The notes beneath the pieces were generated by a model, which saw only the letters and a program-made list of their open reading frames with translations, made no database searches and was not told where the DNA came from. A DNA stretch of 63,641 nucleotides, the filler included, from Octopus bimaculoides (Eukaryota): NCBI RefSeq assembly GCF_001194135.2. It is 5 parts of 4 records of this genome, joined end to end, with 100 filler letters (N's around TTAATTAATTAA, not from the genome) between each part and the next. Parts side by side here need not be neighbours in the genome. Positions count along the whole stretch, not along the records: positions 1 to 18,432 come from NC_069005.1; 4 more parts are not named here. One strand, given 5' to 3'. How positions within the stretch are numbered: the stretch's first letter is position 1; each line of letters starts with the position of its first letter. Of this stretch, positions 2,488 to 18,077 are shown one piece after another. A program made the translations under genes and the position numbers.

Positions 2488-2695
2488 TTAAGGTAGCAAG
2501 TTGGCAGGATTGTTAGCACACCAGGCAAAATGCTTAGTGATATTTCATCTGTCTTTATGTTCTGAGTTCAAATTCTGCCAAGATTAACTTTGCCTTTCAT
2601 CCTATAGGGGTCAATAAAATAAGCAGCCAGTTGAACCCTGGGGTTGATGTCATCAGCTTACCCACCCTCCTTGAACTTGTGCCAAAATTTGGAAG
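2488..2695 (+). mobile_element. SINE family A copy
   Basis: Same head and body as 1025-1660. Confidence 0.8.
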
Positions 2696-4258: not shown

Positions 4259-4849
4259 CTGAAAGTAGAGAAAGAGAAAGGGGAGTGAAAGAGAAGTAGG
4301 TGGGGGGAAGAGAGGAAGAAATAGAATAATAAATAAGAACATTAGAGAGAGATGGGGAGAGAGAAGAGGAAAAAGAAAGAAAATGAAAGAGGAGAAAAAG
4401 ACACAGACAGGCGGATGGAGGAGGGGAGAAAGAGATGGACAAGGAGAGAGGGAGGAAAGAAGGGAGAAAGGAAAGAGAGAGATTGAGAGAAAGATATAGG
4501 AAATCGAAGTCTGTCTTATGCCAATAGGTTCTTTACTTCACTAGACTGTAGTTCATTCCAGTTTTTGAGGTGTATAAGCAACTAAGAGTTAAAAGACTCC
4601 CTCTACACCACTGGATGGAATGTCAGTCCACTACAAGGTTAATCTCCAGTTACAGCTGGCACACATTTCAGCTGTATAAACTGGAAGAATATGAAATAAA
4701 GAATCTCGATCACAGGCAAAAAGTACCACCCGAGCCAAGAATCAAATCCATGACCCATAGAGACTACTAAGTCCTATGTCTTCACGAGAGGAAAGGAAAT
4801 AATATAGAAATAAATGAGAACATAACACTTAAAAGACATCCAGTCCACA

Positions 4850-5110
4850 CTGTAAAGTGCTTGGCATTTGGAAGGGCATCCAGCTGTAAAAACCATGCCA
4901 AAACAGACTTTGCCTGTGTTGGTGCCATATAAAAAGCACTCAGCCCACTCTGTTGAGTGGTTGGTGTTAGGAAGGGCATTCAGCTGTAAAAACCATGCCA
5001 AAACAGACACAGAGGTATGGTGTAGCCTTTTGCCTAGCCAGCTCATATCAAACCATTCAACCCATGCCAGCATGGAAGAAGGATGTTAAACAATGATGAT
5101 GATGATGATA
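4850..5110 (+). mobile_element. RTE-type 3' tail repeat (GGAAGGGCATCCAGCTGTA...CATGCCAGCATGGAA-(GAT)n)
   Basis: Same tail as the RTE at 7200-7880; (GAT)n terminus. Confidence 0.7.
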
Positions 5111-5658
5111 ACAGAGTAATAATTACTGTGATTGCTTTAATGGTCACTTTTCCATACTTACATGCGTCGGACGCAATTTGTTAAAGCAGATAATTTTTAC
5201 ATTATGTACATTATTTACATTTGACGGATATTTGTCCTCATCTCGTTTGTTATTAACACAACGTTTTGGCTGATATATCCTCCAGCCTTCATCAGGTGTC
5301 TTGATCAGCTATACCTGATTTATCAATATCTCCTTGTGTCACAGCTTTGCGATGTTCGTCTATCCTTATTTTGAGGGGGCGACATGTTTCGCCTTTGTAT
5401 AACCTACCACAGCTGCATAGGATGGAGTACATGTATGGAAAAATGGAGACCATCTCCTCTTGTGGGATGAAGTTAAAATAATAGACAGAGAACACTACTG
5501 GAAAATACAAAAACTAAAAGAAGCAGCAAATATGCTAGGACACAACAACCTCCTAAGCAGACCGAGTACAGAGATGAACAGCATATGGGAACCGGTATTG
5601 AGGAAGAATAGGCAAATATTAGATTTATAAGCCCTAAAATTCACTCCATAATTGCCTA

Positions 5659-5733
5659 TGGGCATATGGCGTAACGGTTAAGAGCACGGGCTACTAACCC
5701 CCAAGATTCTGAGTTTGATTTCAGGCAGTGACC
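5659..5733 (+). ncRNA. tRNA-like module (Pol III A/B boxes) inside the Penelope terminal repeat
   Basis: TGGCGTAACGG A box, GAGTTTGATTTC B box (GAGTTCGATTCC in the copy at ~51908), and a GGG-CTACTAA-CCC anticodon-like arm. Confidence 0.7.
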
Positions 5734-5807
5734 TGAATAATAATAAGAAAAAGAAGAACATCGAAAAATACCTTAGGAATGAGAACACAGGTTCAAAATT
5801 TCCCCAA

Positions 5808-5853
5808 GACACCTGATGAAGGCTGGAGGGTATATCAGCCGAAACGTTGTGTT
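5808..5853 (+). ncRNA. Minimal type I hammerhead ribozyme (dimer-type, palindromic stem III)
   Basis: GACAC-CTGATGA-A-GGCTG(loop)CAGCC-GAAACGT-T-GTGTT: stem I GACAC/GTGTT, stem II 5 bp, ACGT palindrome, GUU cleavage triplet. Confidence 0.8.
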
Positions 5854-5967
5854 AACAACAAAGAAGATGAGGATAAATATCTGTCAAATGTAAATAATGT
5901 ACATAATTCCTCATCTCTTAAATATAGAACAGATCATTTTTATTAATGCTTTTTCCTATATATATAT

Positions 5968-6096
5968 CATCATCATCATCATCATCGTTTAACGTCCGCT
6001 TTCCATGCTAGCATGGGTTGGACGATTCGACTGAGGACTGGTGAAACCGGATGGCAACACCAGGCTCCAATCTAATTTGGCAGAGTTTCTACAGCT
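5968..6096 (-). mobile_element. RTE 3' tail fragment
   Basis: Near-identical to 7200-7320; truncated by a gap. Confidence 0.8.
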
Positions 6097-6698
6097 NNNN
6101 NNNNNNNNNNNNNNNNNNNNNNNNNNNNNNNNNNNNNNNNNNNNNNNNNNNNNNNNNNNNNNNNNNNNNNNNNNNNNNNNNNNNNNNNNNNNNNNNNNNN
6201 NNNNNNNNNNNNNNNNNNNNNNNNNNNNNNNNNNNNNNNNNNNNNNNNNNNNNNNNNNNNNNNNNNNNNNNNNNNNNNNNNNNNNNNNNNNNNNNNNNNN
6301 NNNNNNNNNNNNNNNNNNNNNNNNNNNNNNNNTGTGTAATTCTTTTCCAAAAATAAACTGCACTTGATATTCAAGGCTCCGATGGAACTCTAAGGTGTTA
6401 CTCAAACACTAAACTAGGAGTTCACTGCATACTGCATATCATAGCAGAAATAACTGTAAGCTAATGAAGTTTATAAGATAATCGGCTATTCGTTTGTCGT
6501 TTTATTTTCTTATATATGTCCAACCCATGCCAGCATGGAAGGAGGATGTTAAACGATGATGATGATGATATGTACACACAAAATATAAGAAAAAATATAA
6601 CTGAAATTGAATGAGATAAAGCTAAGAAGCTAAAGTTGGTAAAATATACAAAAACTGAAAAACACTCGTAAAAAAACAAAAGAAATATGATGCTTTAC

Positions 6699-8033: not shown

Positions 8034-10976
8034 CAGTGGTGGGCACAGCTAACCAAAAAGTTAGCTTCATTAACCGCTAATCCGCTAACTAAAAAAGTTA
8101 GCTTTGCAAACGCTAAGCCGCTAAACAGGTAAAAAAATTAGTAGAAGCTAACGCTAACTGATAAATGCTCACTTTTATCATATGAATTTAGTTTCGGTTT
8201 GGGCTTTGAGCTCTAAAACCCCTAAAAACAAACCTACAGAGCTGAAATTTTCATGTTGTAGCTTAGACATAGAACTTTCCAAAAAGGTAAAACATGCCAA
8301 GATCAGATGATGATCAAGGTGTATGCAAATAATTAAATGAACAAATGAAATTAAACATTAGTTTTGCAGTCAATATACACTTTATTTACTGTACAAAAAG
8401 GTATCGTATAGCATAGGCATCATACGAAGATGAGATGATGATGAAGGTGTACTACTCTGGCCGGGCCTTCTCCATCACCTTCACATGATGCTGGATGCCC
8501 TTCATAAGCATCAGCCTCTCAAAATTACCATCTGACAGCATCACTCTCTTGGCCCTCAAAACATCTTTGTCTATACAGAATACGTGCGCAACTGCGGCAT
8601 TGGATGGGATGGCAGTGTTATACTTGGTAGACAGGTTGATCAAGACCTGCTCACCCAAAAAGGCAACTTCAGTTAAGACCTCCAGCCAGATCTTCACCAA
8701 GTTCTGTGCCTTGGATTTCAGTCACCTGTGGCTCCTGCTCTCCCGGAACCGAGTGATGTTGCTGAAGAAATCATCTTCCTTGTCCTCATTGCTGGTGGTG
8801 CTGCTGCCCTTTTCCTTGGTCTCCATTAGGGTTGTCTCTATGATGGTCTGCATGACATTCGTTACTCTGCTAACTTGGCTGTTATTATACTGCTCCAGTA
8901 GGTTGTTGAGGATGACAATAGAGTCATGAGTAGAGTTCCATCTGGTACTGTTGTGGACTACCAGCCTCCTCTTCAATGCACCCAGNNNNNNNNNNNNNNN
9001 NNNNNNNNNNNNNNNNNNNNNNNNNNNNNNNNNNNNNNNNNNNNNNNNNNNNNNNNNNNNNNNNNNNNNNNTGGCTCCTGCTCTCCCGGAACCGAGTGAT
9101 GTTGCTGAAGAAATCATCTTCCTCATGCTCATTGCTGGTAGTGCTGCTGCCCTTCTCGTTGGTCTCCATTAGGGCTGTCTCAATGATGGTCCCCATGGCA
9201 TTCGTTACTCTGCTAACTTGGCTGTTATTATACTGCTCCAGTCAGAACAGGTGAAACTTGGGGTGGAAGGCAGTGTCCAGTTGGCACTCTATGTCTTCTA
9301 GGAGGAGCCCAAACCTTTTTGTGATGCCTGCCAGCATCACATCTACCATAGGACTGCAGTACAGGAGATGTTTGAACTTGGCCTCTTTCAACTTCATGAT
9401 GGTAGCCGCTAAAGTTAGCAGAAGGCTCCCAAGATAGGCCTAGTCCTTCCAGTGGATTTTATCCAAGGCCTTGGCAATATTAGACATCACCTGGGCATAC
9501 TCCATCAGGAAGTTGACATCAAAATCAGTGAAGGTCTGCAGCTTCAGCTGAGTCATCACCCTGGGGACAGACCCCTATTTTTCTCCAGCAGGTTGTTGAG
9601 GACAACAACAGAGTCATAGGTAGGGTTCCATCTGGTTCTGTTGAGGACCATCAGCCTCCACTTCAATGCGTCCAGAATGCTGTCTGCCACCACCATGCTG
9701 TGGCTCTGGAGATTCCACAGCTGGACGTGGCATTCCTGTAGGCCGACTTGAACAAAGCGCTGTCAAGAGCCTTGTCGGCATCCACGCTGGCTACCAAGTT
9801 GAAGGTATGGGCTGTGCACTTCATGTGCACTGGCAGCTTTAGGCCCAGGCCACTGTACTTATCAAGGATAGCATCAACAGAAATGTACTCAACTTCATCC
9901 ACATCCCCAGCTTCAAGATCCACGTCCAGGTCCACACCCTTGACACCCTCTTTGTCCGGATCGGCAGCAGCCTCAGGGATGTCTGGCAAAAGTTCAACTT
10001 CTGTACCAAACTGCATAAATGCCTTAACAAAGATTTTGCCATTGTCCCTCATGGTCCTGGTCACCTTGTTTTGCAGATGGAACTTGTAATGGGTGTCCAC
10101 CATGGCCTGGGCGAGAACATCAAAGGTGTGATGTCTTCTGAGCCGAGAGCAGGCCAGGACGGCATGTTGCCTCATGCGGGTCTTGAAATCCAGCCAGTAT
10201 GCTGTCACCCCTAGGTAGGAGCTGTTGTGGTCCAACCAAAAGTCAGTGGTGGTCCCCACCCAGGGGACATCCTTGAGCAATTTGTAATTAAAAAAGGTTA
10301 AATTGTAAAGCGACATAGGTTGTAAAGTTAAAAACTTAAAATTATATANNNNNNNNNNNNNNNNNNNNNNNNNNNNNNNNNNNNNNNNNNNNNNNNNNNN
10401 NNNNNNNAAGGAAATAATTCACCGTCATTATATATAAACTGACGCAGAGTGTGATCAAGGCCTACTAAAAAACAAAACAAAAAAAAAACTAGCCTCTCAT
10501 CCACATCTCCACACAAGCTGCAATGGTTTTTGTGAGCATGTGGTCTGTACAATTTTTTGAGGGAAGAAGGCAGGACATTTGATTGCAGGAAGAGCCGGCC
10601 TTCATCCTATCATCAAACTCGATGGTATGCACTAGGTGTTTCCTTTTGACATGCGACTTCAGGTTGTAGAGGCTTGCCACTTGTCGCTTGATGGTGGTCT
10701 CCTTAGGCTGGCACGTTACGCACTGGAAGTACAGGATTTTGGCATTTCTCTTATCCCTTGACATAAGGACAAAGTAGTCCTCCATGTGGGGCTATGGGTT
10801 CTTAGACTTCTGGTTCTGAACCTGAGTGACCCCTGCCTCATGCACAGCCACTGCAGACTCCTCAACAAGCCCTTCATCCTCTGAACAAAACTTTCCAAAG
10901 TTAACGAAAATGATAATCTGCTAAATGAAAAGTTAGCTTTACTAATTAGCTGTTAACGGAACAGTGCCAACCACTG
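8034..10976 (-). mobile_element. hAT (Ac-like) DNA transposon, degenerate transposase with BED finger and C-terminal dimerisation domain
   Basis: TIRs CAGTGGT(G/T)GGCAC, near-TSD ATAATGAT/ATCATGAC (6/8), and subterminal GCTAA repeats. Protein motifs: CVTCQPK..LKSHVKRKH, SYLGVTAYWLD, CTAHTFNLVA, RWNSTHDS, KYNTAIPSNAAV...LSDGNFERL. Confidence 0.9.
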
Positions 10977-12260: not shown

Positions 12261-12529
12261 ACAATCACACTTAATGTATATGTGTTTGTCCTCAACACCA
12301 CTTAATCGGTGTTGGTTTCTTTATGTCCCTGTAATTTAACAGTTCAGCAAAAGAAACTGATAGAATAAGTATCCAACTTTAAAAAATAAGAACTGGGGTT
12401 GATTTGTTCAACCGAACCCTTCAAAGCTGTGCTCCAGCATGGTCAGAGACTAATGGCTGAAATGATGAATGAAAAGATGAAATATACAGGTGGGTATATG
12501 TGCAGTGTGCAAATGTTAATTCAACATAC

Positions 12530-13701
12530 CTGAGAGCGGAGCCGAAACTGTGATTACTTTTGTTGCAGCTCCCCCGTTACTTCCAGAAATTGTACTTGGC
12601 ATTTTACCAACCATGGAGCTGGCCAGTTTCACTGACGGCTGCATGGCAAGTCTTTGAATCAACATAGAAGAGTTATTTGCCATCTTGTTGGTGTTATTGC
12701 AGACAATCTTACCTCCCTGGCTGGCACTGGAGACCACTTTGGTCATCAGAGAATTACCAGTCTTGTTACCTGTGGCATTCAGCATCAGATTTTTCATAGT
12801 GGAGGTTGCTTGGCAAGAGGAAGAGACCCCACCTGAGGGTTTCTCTCCTGCAGAAGCAACACTGCTACTGCTGCTGCTACTACTGCTGCTGCTGGGCCAC
12901 AATACTTTTACAATGCCTGGCGTTGTGGAAGAGTCTAAACTACTACTACTACTACTACTACTAACACTACTACTATTACTACTACAACTACTACTACTGT
13001 TGTTGTTGTTGTTGTTGTTGTTGCCAGCACTGGCACTGCTAATGCCCTTGGTCTTCATAACCAAGGCTTCTGGCTTTGTAGAAGTTGATGAGGTCCTACA
13101 GTTGTTCTCTACAATGTCCGTGTCACCATTCAGGGTGGTGGAGAGGTTGTTGTTGTTGAGTAATGAAACTGTTGCCAGTGGAGGTGATGACTTCACATCC
13201 ATGAGCTGGCTATCACCGCTGCAGTAGGGGGGTGCAGCAGCAAGTAAGTCAGGAGACACCAGACACGTGCTGGTGCTGGTGCTGGTGGTGGTGGTGGTGG
13301 TGGTGGTGGTGGTAGTGGATGCAGTGGTGATGCATGTAGGAACAATCAGAGAATGCAAAGAGTTTCTGTCGACTGCGGTGAATGCACTCTGCTGTGCAGT
13401 CAATGCTCCGCTCGTTGTCGCAGGCGTTGTTGTTTCAACTGTCGTCGACGTCGATGGGAGGGGNNNNNNNNNNNNNNNNNNNNNNNNNNNNNNNNNNNNN
13501 NNNNNNNNNNNNNNNNNGAAATGGAAGTGGAAGATGACAATGAAGTAGTAGTAGTAGTAGTGGTAGTAGAAGTAGTAGAAGTAGCAGTAGTAGTAGCGGT
13601 GGTGGTGGTGGTGGTGGTGTTGGTAGCGGTGGTCACCGATAGTTTATCTGTTTCAGTTATGCAGTTGATACCTGCAACGCTATTCACAGCTAGGCTGCTG
13701 C

Positions 13702-13732
<31 letters not shown>

Positions 13733-13903
13733 ACTGTCACCAGAGCCGATGCCTCCCGACATGCACGTTGCTGTGCTCTGATGGCCAGGCTGCACCTTGT
13801 TATTGTCACCGTTCTTTGGTGAGTCATTGTTTTGTCTGTAGAGTTGCTTCTGAGCCAAATACTTAGCTATACTGGTTTGCAAGGAGACAACACTGGCCAA
13901 CCA
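12530..13903 (-). CDS. PHF12: PHF12 giant low-complexity exon (WLASVVSLQTSIAKYLAQKQ followed by poly-N/T/S linker); interrupted by an N gap
   Basis: ctttccag acceptor, G|GTATGT donor, phase 0-1. The start matches [20 protein letters not shown]. The frame is open on both sides of the 54-N gap, but the annotated length is 3n rather than the required 3n+1, so the gap size is inexact. Confidence 0.85.
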
Positions 13904-14889
13904 CTGGAAAGACAAGAGGAAGAAAAACAATAAGAAGTGGTATCCGGTGGTGATAATGATGATGACGATGTTAATGTCAACAACAATGACGATGATGATA
14001 TGATGATGATGATATATGCAGATAATGATGATGAGGGTAGTGATAATAATGGGGTTAAGCTCTGTGAGTGAGTGATTGAAACAAAAGTAAAATTTGAAGA
14101 CATAAAAGCAGAAACCAAATTGGAAACAATTCTATACAATTGCTAACATTTTATATTTTATCTTTTATTTGTTTCAGACACTGGACTGTGGCCATTCTGG
14201 GGCACCATCTTGAAGAACAAATCAACCCCAGTACTTATTTTTCCTCTTTAACCCTTTAGTGTTCACATTATTCTGTCAAAAGTAATTTTTATTTATTCAC
14301 ATTCTTTTGAATTAATCCTGCATCATCTTGTAGCTTTGCAATTCTGATGAGGTAACTGTTAACTTTTAGAATGACATTGTAGAGTTGGTGAGAAAGGCTG
14401 GATCTGACCAGTTTGATCATAAAACAGGTAGAATATTTGGCTCGAATATGGCCTGTTTAAATGTTAAAGGGTTAAGTCAAGTACTTACTCTATCAGACTC
14501 TTTTGCTGAGCCCCTAAGTTAGGGGGAGGGGTGACAAACTGGGAGGCGGGGGCACAAGCGGTGGTGGAGAGGATGACACACACACGAACAGGCTTCCATA
14601 CAGTTTCCATTTTCTAAATTCACTCACAAGGCATTGGTAGGCATAGGGCAATAGCAGAAGACACTTGCCTAAGGTATCATGCACTGGGACTGAACCTGAA
14701 ACCATGTGGTTGCAAAGCGGGCTTCTTAACTACACAACTTTAACTATGCCTTTGATGATAATTTTGATGGTGGTGATGATGACAGTGGTTGTAGCAATGA
14801 CAATGGTGATGATGATGATTGTTGTTATAGTATCGTTGTGGCTGAACCCAGTATCATAATGGTGACAATAATGATGATGCTTGCAATGA

Positions 14890-16060
14890 CTGGTATTATA
14901 TTTTATCCCACACCCCACAGAAGAATGGAAAGCAAAATTAGCCTCACCAGAATTTGAACTCAGGACATAAAATGGAAACAATAATCTTTTCTTTTCCATG
15001 ATAGGCACAAGGTCTGAAATTAGGAGGGAGGAGGCTAGTATTGACTCCCAGTCCTCAACAGGTACTTATTTTATTGACTCCACCAAAAGATAAAAGGCAA
15101 AGTTGACCTTGGCAGAATTTGAACCCAGAAAACCTAGAAGAAATGCTGTTACGCATTCTATCCAGTGTCCTAAGAAGACTGCCAGCTTGCAACTTTGTAA
15201 TAATAATCCTTTCTTATTTTGGTACAAGGACAACAAATTTGAGGAGTGGGAAAGTCAATTACATCAAGCCCCAGTGCTCATCTGGTATTTATTTTACTGA
15301 CCCCAAAAGGATGAAAGGTTAAGTCAACTCTGGCAGAATTTGAACCCAGAATGTAAAGAAATGCTGCTAAGTATTTTGTCTGGCATGCTAATGCTTCTGC
15401 CAGCTTGTCACTATATAATAATAATAATAATAATAATCCTTTCTACAGGCACAAGGCCTGAAATTTTGGGGGAGGACACTAGTCAATTACTTTAACGCCA
15501 GTGTGTAACTGGTATTTATTTCATCTACAATGAAAGGATGGAAGATAAAGTCAACCTTGGTGGAATTTGAGCTCAGAACGTAAGGACGAATGGAATGCAA
15601 CTAAGCATTTTGCCCAGGAGAATAATGATTATAATAATCTTTCCATTATTAGAGGCACAAGACCTGAAATTTTGAGGGAAAGGGAACAATTACATCAACT
15701 CCAGTGTTCAAATCGTACTTATTCTGATGACCACAAAAAGATGAAAGGTAAAGCTGACCTTGGCAGAATATAAACCCAGAATGTAAAGATGCAGAAGAAA
15801 TGCTGCTATGCATTTTGTCCAGCATCCCTAACAACTCTGCCAGCTCATTGCTTAGTAATAACGGTTTCAAATTTTGGCACAAGGCCAACAGTTTCAAGGG
15901 AGTGGTAAGTCAATTACATTGACACCAGTGTTCAACTGGTACTTATTTTATCTACCCCGAAAGGATGAAAGGCAAAGTCAACCTTGACGAAATTAGAACT
16001 TGGAATGTAAAGATGGATGATTTTCCACTAAATATTTTGCTCACCACCTTTGACCACTTA
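14890..16060 (-). mobile_element. Tandem array of ~5-6 diverged SINE family A copies in a PHF12 intron
   Basis: Repeated GGCACAAGG...GGTACTTATTTTAT...GGATGAAAGG...GAATTTGAAC units separated by (TAA)n. Confidence 0.85.
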
Positions 16061-17154: not shown

Positions 17155-18077
17155 CTGTTAAGAGAAAAAAAATAATAAGTAGCTTTTATTGATTTCAAAT
17201 TCTGGTACAAGACTAGCAATTTCTAGGGAAGACGTATAGTCAGTTACATCAACACCAGTGCATAACTGGTACTTATCATATCAACCCCCGAAAGGATGAA
17301 AAGCAAAGTCTCGGCAGAACTTGAACTCAGAATGTAAGGTTGGTCAAAATGCTGCAAAGCTTTTTGCCCAGCACAGTAACAATTCTGCCAGCTCGCCATC
17401 TAATTAGTAGTTAGTATTAGTAATTAGCTTGATCAAGTTTTTCTTAAATGAACAAGAAAAGAAAAGGATTTTTGGTAGATAAAATAGCACCAATGGAACA
17501 AGGGAAATGAGAGACAGACAGTTGGACAGGTAGGAAAAAATTCAAAAGGTAGCAAGTAATATGGCTGAGAAAGAAATCAGGTCTTTTTGCTGTTTTGTTG
17601 TGTTGGGTGTTTTTTTTTTTTAAATCATTTAATCAGAAAGAAGCAATATTTATGATGCATCTGTCAGTCTGTTGGAAATTCTGTAGAATGAAACCTGTAA
17701 AGAAAGTGTAAACAAAGACAGATTTGGTCACTCAACTTGCTAGAAATAGCAGCTAAATCTCCCTTGAATTACATCCTACCATTTAAAAAAAATTGGGGAT
17801 AATGCATTGGATAATTTGTTAATAAATACGTTACATATCAGAATGAAACGGGAGATGATCATAAGTCTGGTTGATTAGGTCAAAGCTGGAGCTAAACACA
17901 AAATGAGAAAAGAAAAATTAGGATGAGTAGAAAGGAAATTCTAGAAGAAAGCAATTCTGGGGACACCTGCAATCCATTCTCTTTATCTTTTGTCTTAGTC
18001 ACTGGACTGCTGCCATGCTGGAGCACTGCCTCGAAGGGTTTTAGTCATACAAATTAACTCTAGTACTTATATATTTA

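Follow-up and report, generated by a model that had tools for sequence, protein, structure and literature searches.

On comparison with homologous copies, a 74-nt tRNA-derived segment that lies between an endonuclease-like ORF and a minimal hammerhead ribozyme in Octopus bimaculoides is an inherited part of the 3′ UTR of a cephalopod Penelope-like element (PLE) lineage. The stretch of DNA that was analyzed, here called the window, is 63,641 nt long, and positions 5201 to 5932 are occupied by a single dead insertion complex of such an element, composed of a forward 5′-truncated copy and an adjoining inverted partial copy. The segment is best read as the relic of a tRNA or tRNA-SINE head from which the cloverleaf has been lost, and its better-preserved copies keep two internal candidate Pol III promoter boxes at tRNA-like spacing. 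The explanation that we favor, to which we would give slightly less than an even chance of being correct, is that the PLE tail may form a built-in Pol III-driven SINE unit with a dimer-dependent hammerhead. The forward copy comprises, in order, the endonuclease-like C-terminus, the stop codon, a linker, the tRNA-derived segment, an A-rich spacer, the minimal hammerhead, and the tail; the features of the whole complex are as follows.

5201 to 5303, minus strand: inverted copy of the 103-nt terminal block (hammerhead and proximal tail), from repeat search and pairwise alignment.
5304 to 5431, minus strand: inverted N-terminal half of the endonuclease-like domain of the PLE (YSILCSCGRLYKGETCRPLKIRIDEHRKAV...SGIAD), from translation and alignment to copy L007.
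5430 to 5630, plus strand: C-terminal half of the endonuclease-like domain (HVWKNGDHLLLWDEVKIIDRE...ILDL) with stop codon TAA at 5628-5630, from translation and alignment.
5616 to 5659, plus strand: conserved linker block (ATATTAGATTTATAAGCCCTAAAATTCAC...) across the stop codon, lying 5′ of the tRNA-derived segment in every related copy, from alignment.
5660 to 5733, plus strand: tRNA-derived, SINE-head-like segment of 74 nt, from box scan and homologous segments.
5734 to 5804, plus strand: A-rich spacer, in which 5736-5748 form a short (AAT)n-like run.
5805 to 5907, plus strand: terminal block with the minimal type I hammerhead (5809-5852), from motif pattern and fold.
5908 to 5932, plus strand: tail extension (TCCTCATCTCTTAAATATAGAACAG) of 25 nt, present on the plus arm only, from matches in O. 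vulgaris locus L001.

The blocks at 5201-5303 and 5805-5907 form an inverted repeat of 103 nt with 93% identity (repeat search and pairwise alignment), and both hammerhead copies, that of the plus arm and a mutated one on the minus arm, are contained in it. The tRNA-derived segment is not part of this repeat and so lies outside the terminal repeat at the window locus, where the earlier note had placed it inside. On the minus-strand arm, the N-terminal endonuclease half (5431 to 5304) is fused to the inverted hammerhead block (5303 to 5201), whose core is dead because G12 is replaced by A at window position 5267 and GAAA reads AAAA. The inverted N-terminal half was aligned with positions 162-291 of reference copy L007 and the plus-strand C-terminal half with L007 from position 290 onward; the latter begins exactly at the end of the inverted half, with a 2-nt CA overlap. 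The inverted junction thus falls at 5430/5431, and a gap of Ns begins farther along, at 6098. The tail sequence of the plus arm also terminates two O. vulgaris copies (L001 3968-4000, inverted, and L001 5830-5800), and comparable inverted-tail junctions are found in L001 (P0002) and L013 (P0019). A hammerhead together with an adjoining inverted 5′-truncated copy is a textbook PLE feature.

The ORF ends at 5630, as had been claimed; on the plus strand it covers no more than the 67 C-terminal codons of the endonuclease-like domain, the N-terminal half being inverted. Motifs of the GIY-YIG endonucleases can be fitted to the domain by eye (VYSIPCSC..YKGET..R..EH), but Pfam named no GIY-YIG family for it at E ≤ 10. 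A profile search of PDB sequences with this domain gave zero matches, and its AlphaFold2 model was weak (pLDDT 68), with no Foldseek match to the PDB below E = 3. Homologues of the domain with 83% identity are present in Octopus vulgaris and on a metagenome scaffold. The endonuclease-like ORF of related locus L003 is directly preceded on its own strand by a reverse transcriptase (RT) fragment, in which the motifs LSPVLANIYM and RYVDDTF occur and which Pfam assigned to RVT_1 (E = 5e-7, 30.0 bits, cut-off 29.6). The RT ORF is absent from the window because the window copy is 5′-truncated.

The Penelope tail does carry a minimal type I hammerhead, in agreement with the earlier note, and its core at 5809-5852 is intact: ACAC-CUGAUGA-A-GGCUG(G)...(U)CAGCC-GAAA-CGUU/GUGU, with CUGAUGA at 5813-5819, GAAA at 5841-5844, and the cleavage-site triplet GUU, cleavage being predicted after U5848 (slash). 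Helix I consists of ACAC/GUGU plus one G-U pair, A5820 is unpaired, helix II is formed by GGCUGG/UCAGCC, and helix III is replaced by the palindrome ACGU; the minimum-free-energy fold includes helices I and II. The pattern CTGATGA-N(12-30)-CGAAACGT occurred once in the window and in none of 200 shuffles. Across nine copies, 82% of the cells in the hammerhead helices were paired, versus 17-51% when the partners were slid, and the two compensatory pairs seen in these copies were no excess over shuffles. The covariance-model searches that had been proposed returned no Rfam Hammerhead match in the window or related loci, either at the gathering score or at E ≤ 10, which is expected because the motif lacks helix III, and no Rfam tRNA match at E ≤ 10 in the window and related copies. 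One O. bimaculoides "protein" in UniRef (A0A0L8FV75) is an ORF spanning a hammerhead and tail. The 55-aa ORF over the hammerhead and tail has a single database relative and is no proxy for copy number.

The tRNA-like unit described earlier, with its A box, B box, loop CTACTAA, and AAT run, is present in the window. The A box at 5667-5677 (TGGCGTAACGG) has two mismatches to TRGCNNAGTGG and the B box at 5712-5722 (AGTTTGATTTC) has three to GGTTCRANNCC; the boxes are 34 nt apart, and a stem-loop GGG/CTACTAA/CCC is located at 5688-5700. Both boxes are decayed in this copy, which is probably silent. The segment has neither an acceptor stem nor a cloverleaf. ARAGORN identified 0 tRNA genes in the window and L001-L005, and when applied to the extracted segments (seven copies and the near-group consensus) it found none at thresholds lowered to 80% and only inconsistent calls at 70%. 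With ARAGORN and Rfam silent, it is motifs and comparison, and not curated models, that underlie the tRNA and hammerhead labels. The window copy contains no run of T ≥ 4 between head and tail, and as a Pol III signature such depletion is matched by base composition alone, which gives the absence in about half of shuffles. A scan of the surroundings yielded eight A + B pairs with ≤2 mismatches in 160 kb of strands, two of which were the module itself. Alignment to an approximate panel of human tRNAs gave no clear winner for the tRNA of origin, Thr, Arg, Glu, and Gln having similar scores, and a tRNA-Gln link to the Sm-alpha elements of schistosomes was dropped on the same alignment. Other tRNA-type SINE heads were considered as the source, and no close relative was found among those compared.

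The unit of tRNA-derived segment and hammerhead recurs in other genomes. The segment occupies a homologous position, with a homologous 5′ flank, in nine related 3′ UTRs of two PLE subfamilies (homologous segments at L001a, L007, L002-L006, and L014). These come from three or more assemblies, the sources being Octopus vulgaris, a metagenome scaffold, and an ENA assembly, and they uphold the claim that the module is a part of the family repeat and did not arrive by a chance insertion at this one locus. A shared order of ORF stop, ATTARRTTTATAAG block, tRNA-derived segment, spacer, hammerhead, and tail holds in O. vulgaris L001a, in scaffold L007 (which ends 5′ of the hammerhead), and in the distant subfamily of L002-L006 and L014, whose amino acid identity is 59-66%. 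Loci L008, L011, and L012 have 3′ flanks too short for the module comparison and were left out of it. The earlier note had asked whether the boxes are kept across copies, and in the best-preserved relatives they are canonical: perfect A boxes are found in L001a (TGGCGTAGTGG), L007 (TGGCATAGTGG), and L003 (TAGCATAGTGG), and B boxes with one mismatch in L007 (AGTTCAAATCC) and in L003 and L004 (GGTTCAATCCT), such that the A/B mismatches are 0/1 in L007 and L003 and 0/3 in L001a. The two boxes are 33-34 nt apart in near-group copies and 53 nt apart in those of the far group.

Comparison of the near-group and far-group consensus sequences gave identities of 0.73 for the A-box region, 0.60 for the B-box region, 0.73-0.87 for the linker, and 0.6-0.87 for the hammerhead and tail, versus 0.27-0.4 with a 19-nt indel for the inter-box region and 0-0.4 for the spacers, both at chance level. 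The 36 nt upstream of the A box were similar beyond shuffles (13/2000 and 2/2000), and the inter-box similarity between subfamilies was not significant against shuffles. The pattern of conservation seen in these alignments is that expected of a promoter and not of an RNA structure. The spacer site is expanded to long (AAT)n/(AAC)n arrays in copy L001b and is replaced by ∼110 nt of other sequence in the distant subfamily. Copy L001b is an ORF-less head-to-head pair in which both arms start within ∼3 nt of GGGCAT, the predicted tRNA +1; it was the only ORF-less locus found in a body of cephalopod sequence far too small for a census. In a third subfamily (L013, with P0014 assigned by translation), the same hammerhead is preceded by a 3′ UTR of a different, non-tRNA kind. 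Endonuclease identity does not make this subfamily an outgroup, and the module can therefore be dispensed with or exchanged. A scan of JGI metagenomes detected two distant PLEs, at 28% and 44% identity, in neither of which the module was visible, and a scan of viral contigs for further copies found nothing. A 20-mer scan of genome contigs gave one match, in a Phycisphaerae MAG, that was judged to be chance.

A Pol III promoter role for the segment is plausible from these comparisons. According to the favored explanation, TFIIIC would bind the A and B boxes in master copies, and Pol III would initiate close to GGGCAT at 5660, ∼7-10 nt upstream of the A box, and would read through the spacer, hammerhead, and PLE tail to the first T run of the flank. 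The product would be a ∼280-nt RNA bearing the 3′ tail that the PLE reverse transcriptase and endonuclease use, so that the last ∼275 nt of the element would serve as a built-in SINE, whose copying in trans would not require the Pol II transcript of the ORF. Helix III is missing from the hammerhead, and a single transcript should stay uncut, with cleavage needing two units; a hammerhead that cut a single Pol III transcript would sever the head from the tail. Two units joined as a tandem or dimer would allow cleavage into retrozyme-like unit RNAs. We put forward only as a doubtful possibility that an autonomous PLE lineage carries a working Pol III-driven SINE, with tRNA head, minimal hammerhead, and PLE tail, in its own 3′ UTR.

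Several observations count against the promoter reading. The boxes of the window copy have their two and three mismatches, and none of the copies either folds as a tRNA or is matched by the Rfam tRNA model. In any tRNA it is the A and B boxes that are conserved most strongly, and the apparent box conservation could arise partly from replacement by another tRNA-derived sequence. The segment might instead be a neutral passenger: a SINE of tRNA origin, or a tRNA retro-pseudogene, with simple repeats as its tail, that has no function for the element and that entered the 3′ UTR of an ancestral master PLE by insertion or by co-reverse-transcription and has been carried since; we regard this as a real possibility, if on the whole an unlikely one. 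It accords with the near group, in which the segment is followed directly by (AAT)n as in a SINE with a microsatellite tail, with the loss of the cloverleaf, with the sister subfamily that lacks the segment, and with an octopus genome packed with tRNA-derived SINEs, which would therefore make capture easy. However, the A box and B box have been kept about as well as the hammerhead while the spacers are saturated, perfect A boxes persist in three separate decayed copies of both subfamilies, and the module was kept through the 19-nt indel between the boxes. If the sequence is such a passenger, it would still be a useful point for annotation, as units of this type are prone to being miscalled as tRNA-SINEs or genes.

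The same box conservation would be expected of a TFIIIC-binding site that is not productively transcribed, an ETC-like or boundary element that shields the element from silencing or affects the surrounding chromatin. Boundary activity of tRNA genes and B-box sites is established, and nothing in the sequence separates such a site from a promoter. However, conservation is seen in the A box as much as in the B box, whereas ETC-type sites need mainly the B box, and we consider this explanation improbable. The position in the 3′ UTR, the 3-bp stem with its 7-nt loop, and a T-arm-like hairpin could also suggest a tRNA mimic at the RNA level, processed by RNase P or RNase Z in the manner of mascRNA or recognized by the PLE reverse transcriptase. 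The absence of a cloverleaf and of an Rfam tRNA match in the searches described above makes such a mimic quite improbable, as do a 3′ side (CAGTGACC) that is unable to pair with the 5′ side (GGGCATA) and an anticodon-arm region that is the least conserved part. A private chance SINE insertion in the window copy, or chance look-alikes of the A and B boxes, would fit the imperfect boxes of this copy and the many tRNA-derived SINE heads of the surrounding DNA, but this is refuted by the nine other loci with homologous position and 5′ flank and merits almost no weight.

The earlier note knew of no description of the combination. A tRNA head followed by a hammerhead is already known from the schistosome elements Sm-alpha and Sj-alpha, and Pol III promoters within terminal repeats are known from Cassandra, Helenus, and Ajax; what held is that we found no prior report, in PLE papers or the rest of the literature searched, of a tRNA-derived A/B-box module between the ORF stop and the hammerhead of an ORF-bearing PLE, nor any printed copy of the window element sequences. 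The role of the PLE hammerhead has been described as unknown (PMC7761336), and the ribozyme has been viewed as possibly a parasite of PLEs (PMC8557442). Pol III boxes upstream of the hammerhead would offer a concrete route, with transcripts that would be initiated in the 3′ UTR, carry the PLE tail, and be cut only in dimers. If the built-in SINE is real, each insertion longer than ∼275 nt would seed a source of short, dimer-cleavable RNAs that PLE enzymes could copy. It would also connect PLEs physically with SINE-like elements that, as in the Sm-alpha type, have a tRNA head and a hammerhead, show how such SINEs could arise from a PLE tail, and supply a promoter for hammerhead-bearing PLE derivatives, the retrozymes, that are said to have none.

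The window element shares most of its architecture with known PLEs. Its hammerhead matches the min-HHR of PLE terminal repeats (PMC4209133), with a CUGANGA...GAAA core, a helix I of 4-5 bp, and only the palindrome ACGU in place of helix III, implying action as a dimer (PMC8557442). As in PLEs, the hammerhead is near the 3′ end, downstream of the RT/endonuclease ORF, two hammerheads are ∼500 bp apart on opposite strands, and an inverted 5′-truncated copy adjoins the 5′ end (PMC8557442). PLE insertions have a one-sided "tail" of 30-40 bp (PMC8557442), which the 25-nt extension of the plus arm fits. The window hammerhead has a helix II of 6 bp, compared with the 7-8 bp of the Schistosoma consensus. 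The window locus shows no direct (tandem) pseudo-LTR, and the A/B-box segment between ORF stop and hammerhead in the window lineage goes unmentioned in the PLE papers cited.

Schistosome retroposons Sm-alpha and Sj-alpha are SINE-like, have a tRNA-derived Pol III head followed by a hammerhead, and appear to be transcribed by Pol III, the Sm-alpha head being tRNA-Gln-like (PMC2770079, PMC6765202). The octopus unit resembles them in joining a tRNA-derived head to a hammerhead within a short unit, and the cleavage of multimeric or tandem transcripts in Sm-alpha and Sj-alpha is predicted likewise for the window lineage. Sm-alpha, however, stands alone as a non-autonomous, high-copy element, and its hammerhead is canonical, with helix III and loop contacts, whereas the octopus ribozyme is of the minimal PLE type and its head-hammerhead unit is physically continuous with the coding body of what is presumed to be the autonomous partner. 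Metazoan non-LTR retrozymes (PMC7229834) have been proposed to be non-autonomous derivatives of PLEs (bioRxiv 10.64898/2026.07.22.740005) and are described as having no known promoter (PMC7761336). They share with the octopus unit a short ORF-less form, a type I hammerhead, a kinship to PLE terminal regions, and presumed mobilization by PLEs. Retrozymes are tandem repeats of ∼170-400 bp that are expressed as circular RNAs; nhmmer found no tandem copies of the octopus unit in the window or any related locus examined, and, unlike retrozymes, the unit carries a candidate promoter.

Pol III promoters are present in the LTRs of the TRIMp3 elements Cassandra (5S), Helenus (tRNA), and Ajax (5S) (PMC10886601). 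The octopus module is like these in that only the promoter motifs, and not a functional RNA, are conserved, a condition thought in TRIMp3 to stem from SINE insertion (PMC10886601). TRIMp3 are non-autonomous LTR elements that possess a primer-binding site and polypurine tract and are mobilized by Copia or Gypsy, whereas the octopus host is a PLE lineage with RT and endonuclease-like coding sequence and its module is coupled to a ribozyme. SINEs are laid out as a tRNA-type head and the 3′ tail of an autonomous partner (PMC5786205, PMC10886601). In the classical LINE-SINE pair, head and tail are joined only in the SINE, whereas in the octopus lineage the head is inside the autonomous element, and every copy longer than ∼275 nt therefore carries the whole SINE-like unit.

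The window locus (5201-5932) comprises the 5'-truncated forward arm of a Penelope-like element (PLE) and an adjoining inverted arm. The ORF stop, the tRNA-derived segment, its boxes, and the hammerhead were all re-located in the window sequence where the earlier note had placed them, and the forward arm reads as follows.

5628-5630 (+), stop TAA of the ORF, in the frame reading HVWKNGDHLLLWDEVKIIDREHYWKIQKLKEAANMLGHNNLLSRPSTEMNSIWEPVLRKNRQILDL (translation)
5660-5733 (+), tRNA-derived segment, opening with GGGCATA
5667-5677 (+), A box TGGCGTAACGG, two mismatches to TRGCNNAGTGG (box scan)
5688-5700 (+), stem-loop GGG/CTACTAA/CCC
5712-5722 (+), B box AGTTTGATTTC, three mismatches to GGTTCRANNCC (box scan)
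5734-5804 (+), A-rich stretch including a short AAT run
5809-5852 (+), hammerhead ACAC-CUGAUGA-A-GGCUGG...UCAGCC-GAAA-CGUU/GUGU

The A-to-B box distance was 34 nt by box scan. The hammerhead pattern occurred once in the window and in none of 200 shuffles, and helices I and II were both present in the minimum-free-energy fold of 5804-5862. The tail of the forward arm is 25 nucleotides longer than that of the inverted arm (5908-5932), and two O. vulgaris copies end in the same sequence. A 55-aa ORF is open across the hammerhead and tail (5779-5946, +); its sole database relative, the O. bimaculoides 'uncharacterized protein' UniRef A0A0L8FV75 (84% identity), presumably represents a false gene prediction in a further copy of the unit, the stretch from linker to tail.

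A rebuilt 110-aa peptide of the endonuclease-like domain was used as the query and had 23 relatives, the best being an O. vulgaris hypothetical protein and a metagenome ORF (each 83% identity). In one related locus (L003) a reverse transcriptase fragment (Pfam RVT_1, E=5e-7; RYVDD) lies just upstream of the endonuclease-like ORF on the same strand. GIY-YIG-like motifs were recognized in the domain by eye, and Pfam, a PDB profile search, and AlphaFold2/Foldseek gave no confirmation of that assignment. The window hammerhead lacks helix III, pairs 4-5 bp in helix I, and leaves a base unpaired 5' of stem II, all features described for the minimal hammerheads of PLEs (PMC4209133). Across nine hammerhead copies, 82% of helix cells were paired versus 17-51% when the partners were slid; the two compensatory pairs found in these helices were not above shuffles. 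One copy (L006 10727-10782) has the core UUGAAAA (U3...A8), a covariant reported for Cercyon PLEs (PMC4209133), and this variant may be just decay, as helix II of that copy is broken.

The two arms share a 103-nt inverted repeat (5201-5303 versus 5805-5907, 93% identity), and the N-terminal half of the endonuclease-like domain that the forward arm lacks (YSILCSCGRLYKGETCRPLKIRIDEHRKAV...SGIAD) is encoded on the minus strand from this repeat to 5431. When both arms were aligned to the intact copy on metagenome scaffold L007, the inverted arm (5302-5431, -) corresponded to reference 162-291 and the forward arm began at reference 290; the arms are therefore neighboring stretches of a single template that overlap by 2 nt (CA). 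At reference 291 the inverted arm switches directly to the hammerhead block, again with CA at the join (junction 5303/5304), and the central junction (5430/5431) lies within the palindrome TACATGTA. This arrangement could have arisen by inversion of 130 bp in place or, alternatively, by twin priming in which the second cDNA jumped to the template at the exact point where the first had stopped. Published PLEs likewise have a 5'-truncated, inverted copy at their 5' end and a tail on one side only (30-40 bp there, 25 nt here) (PMC8557442), and pairs of minimal hammerheads on opposite strands, 100-700 bp apart, are known from PLEs (PMC4209133). The inverted-arm hammerhead is dead, with G12 changed to A at 5267.

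The PLE complex is flanked on both sides by a SINE with a (CAT)n head, in inverted orientation, at 4774-5109 (-) and 5969-6096 (+). The left copy is separated from the complex by 92 bp and the right copy by 37 bp; the latter runs into an assembly gap (N's from 6098 to about 6340), and the region is palindromic. A different tRNA-derived octopus SINE forms head-to-tail units at 1025-1680 and 2489-2685 (+) and at 14915-16040 and 17238-17421 (-), with periods of about 203-227 bp (repeat families D4, D5, D8-D10, D12, D17); these are tandem arrays, not dispersed single copies. Within 8450-10800 and 12516-13930 (both -), N-gap-broken hAT-transposase-like ORFs were noted by eye (CxAHTFNL motif, BED-like zinc-finger pattern), for which Pfam gave no match, as were long Ser/Thr/Asn-rich ORFs that look like host coding exon.

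The DNA around relatives was fetched and inspected for the tRNA-derived module. It was present in both near loci (about 83% aa identity), O. vulgaris L001a and L007, the latter scaffold stopping short of the hammerhead. In the far group (59-66% aa identity; ENA assembly ERZ21867824) it was present in L002-L005, with only the 3' half in L006 and the 5' half in L014. The order of ORF stop, conserved ATTARRTTTATAAG block, tRNA-derived segment, spacer, hammerhead, and tail was constant in all sufficiently complete copies, and the 36 nt upstream of the A box were alike between near and far groups beyond shuffles (13/2000 and 2/2000). We conclude that the module is a component of the family. A private SINE insertion in the window copy, which the earlier note had named as a possible refutation, is excluded because related loci share the module in position, order, and 5' flank. 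In L013 (2092-2420, ENA ERZ26693861) the stop is separated from a homologous hammerhead and tail by about 245 nt of 3'UTR that is neither related nor tRNA-derived, and protein P0014, which by its read-through translation also has an unrelated 3'UTR, belongs to this sister subfamily (67-68% aa identity). Endonuclease identity does not make this subfamily an outgroup, its value against the far group (0.74) equaling that among far-group members; at least one loss, replacement, or exchange of the module has therefore taken place, which suggests that the ORF-to-hammerhead stretch is modular and exchangeable. Two distant PLEs from JGI metagenomes showed no such module.

No copy yielded a cloverleaf: ARAGORN was empty even at 80% thresholds and made inconsistent calls only at 70%. 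The covariance-model checks proposed in the earlier note were likewise negative, with no Rfam tRNA match at E<=10 and no score for the window hammerhead from the Rfam hammerhead models. The 3' side of the segment is unable to pair with its 5' side, and comparison with tRNA sequences assigned no source tRNA. Between the near and far consensuses, identity was 0.73 in the A-box region and 0.60 in the B-box region, compared with 0.27-0.4 in the inter-box region (including a 19-nt indel), 0-0.4 in the spacers, 0.73-0.87 in the linker, and 0.6-0.87 in the hammerhead and tail; the box scan found perfect A boxes in L001a, L007, and L003 and one-mismatch B boxes in L007, L003, and L004. Boxes kept while the stretch between them drifts freely are what an internal Pol III promoter, not an RNA structure, would predict. 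An ORF-less O. vulgaris copy of the unit (L001b; OX597819.1, L001 5795-6135, -) retains an intact hammerhead, and its (AAT)n site has grown into an (AAT)n/(AAC)n stretch several hundred bp long. Two tRNA-head fragments are paired head to head in this copy, and in this single case the start of each arm falls no more than about 3 nt from GGGCAT, the position at which Pol III would be expected to begin transcribing a tRNA-type head.

Because the boxes are conserved with free drift between them and both L001b arms start at GGGCAT, we tentatively favor module, hammerhead, and tail as a candidate Pol III-driven, SINE-like unit embedded in the PLE. The main rival, that the module is a neutral passenger, we consider rather unlikely. 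Service to TFIIIC only is a minor alternative, as is an RNA-level tRNA mimic, of which box conservation with free inter-box drift is not expected. No run of four or more T occurs within the unit, an absence accounted for by base composition. The earlier interpretation is partly supported: it stands as regards a module inherited by the PLE family with conserved boxes, but not for the local copy, a dead fragment that is probably silent, its boxes having decayed; nor does the module lie inside the terminal repeat of this locus, since the 103-nt inverted repeat excludes the tRNA-derived segment.

A hammerhead in the PLE terminal region is already known. Literature searches, which did not reach Repbase or most subscription papers, turned up no description of a tRNA-derived module in an ORF-bearing PLE (absence of evidence only) and no printed module or unit sequences. 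Animal retrozymes have been proposed to be non-autonomous PLE derivatives in a preprint that mentions no tRNA, Pol III, or promoter (bioRxiv 10.64898/2026.07.22.740005), and a review describes retrozymes as seemingly promoterless (PMC7761336). Small-RNA-gene promoters do occur in the terminal repeats of Cassandra, Helenus, and Ajax (PMC10886601). In Sm-alpha/Sj-alpha, a tRNA-derived head, apparently transcribed by Pol III, is followed by a hammerhead (PMC2770079, PMC6765202), and the octopus PLE unit has this same head-then-hammerhead order.
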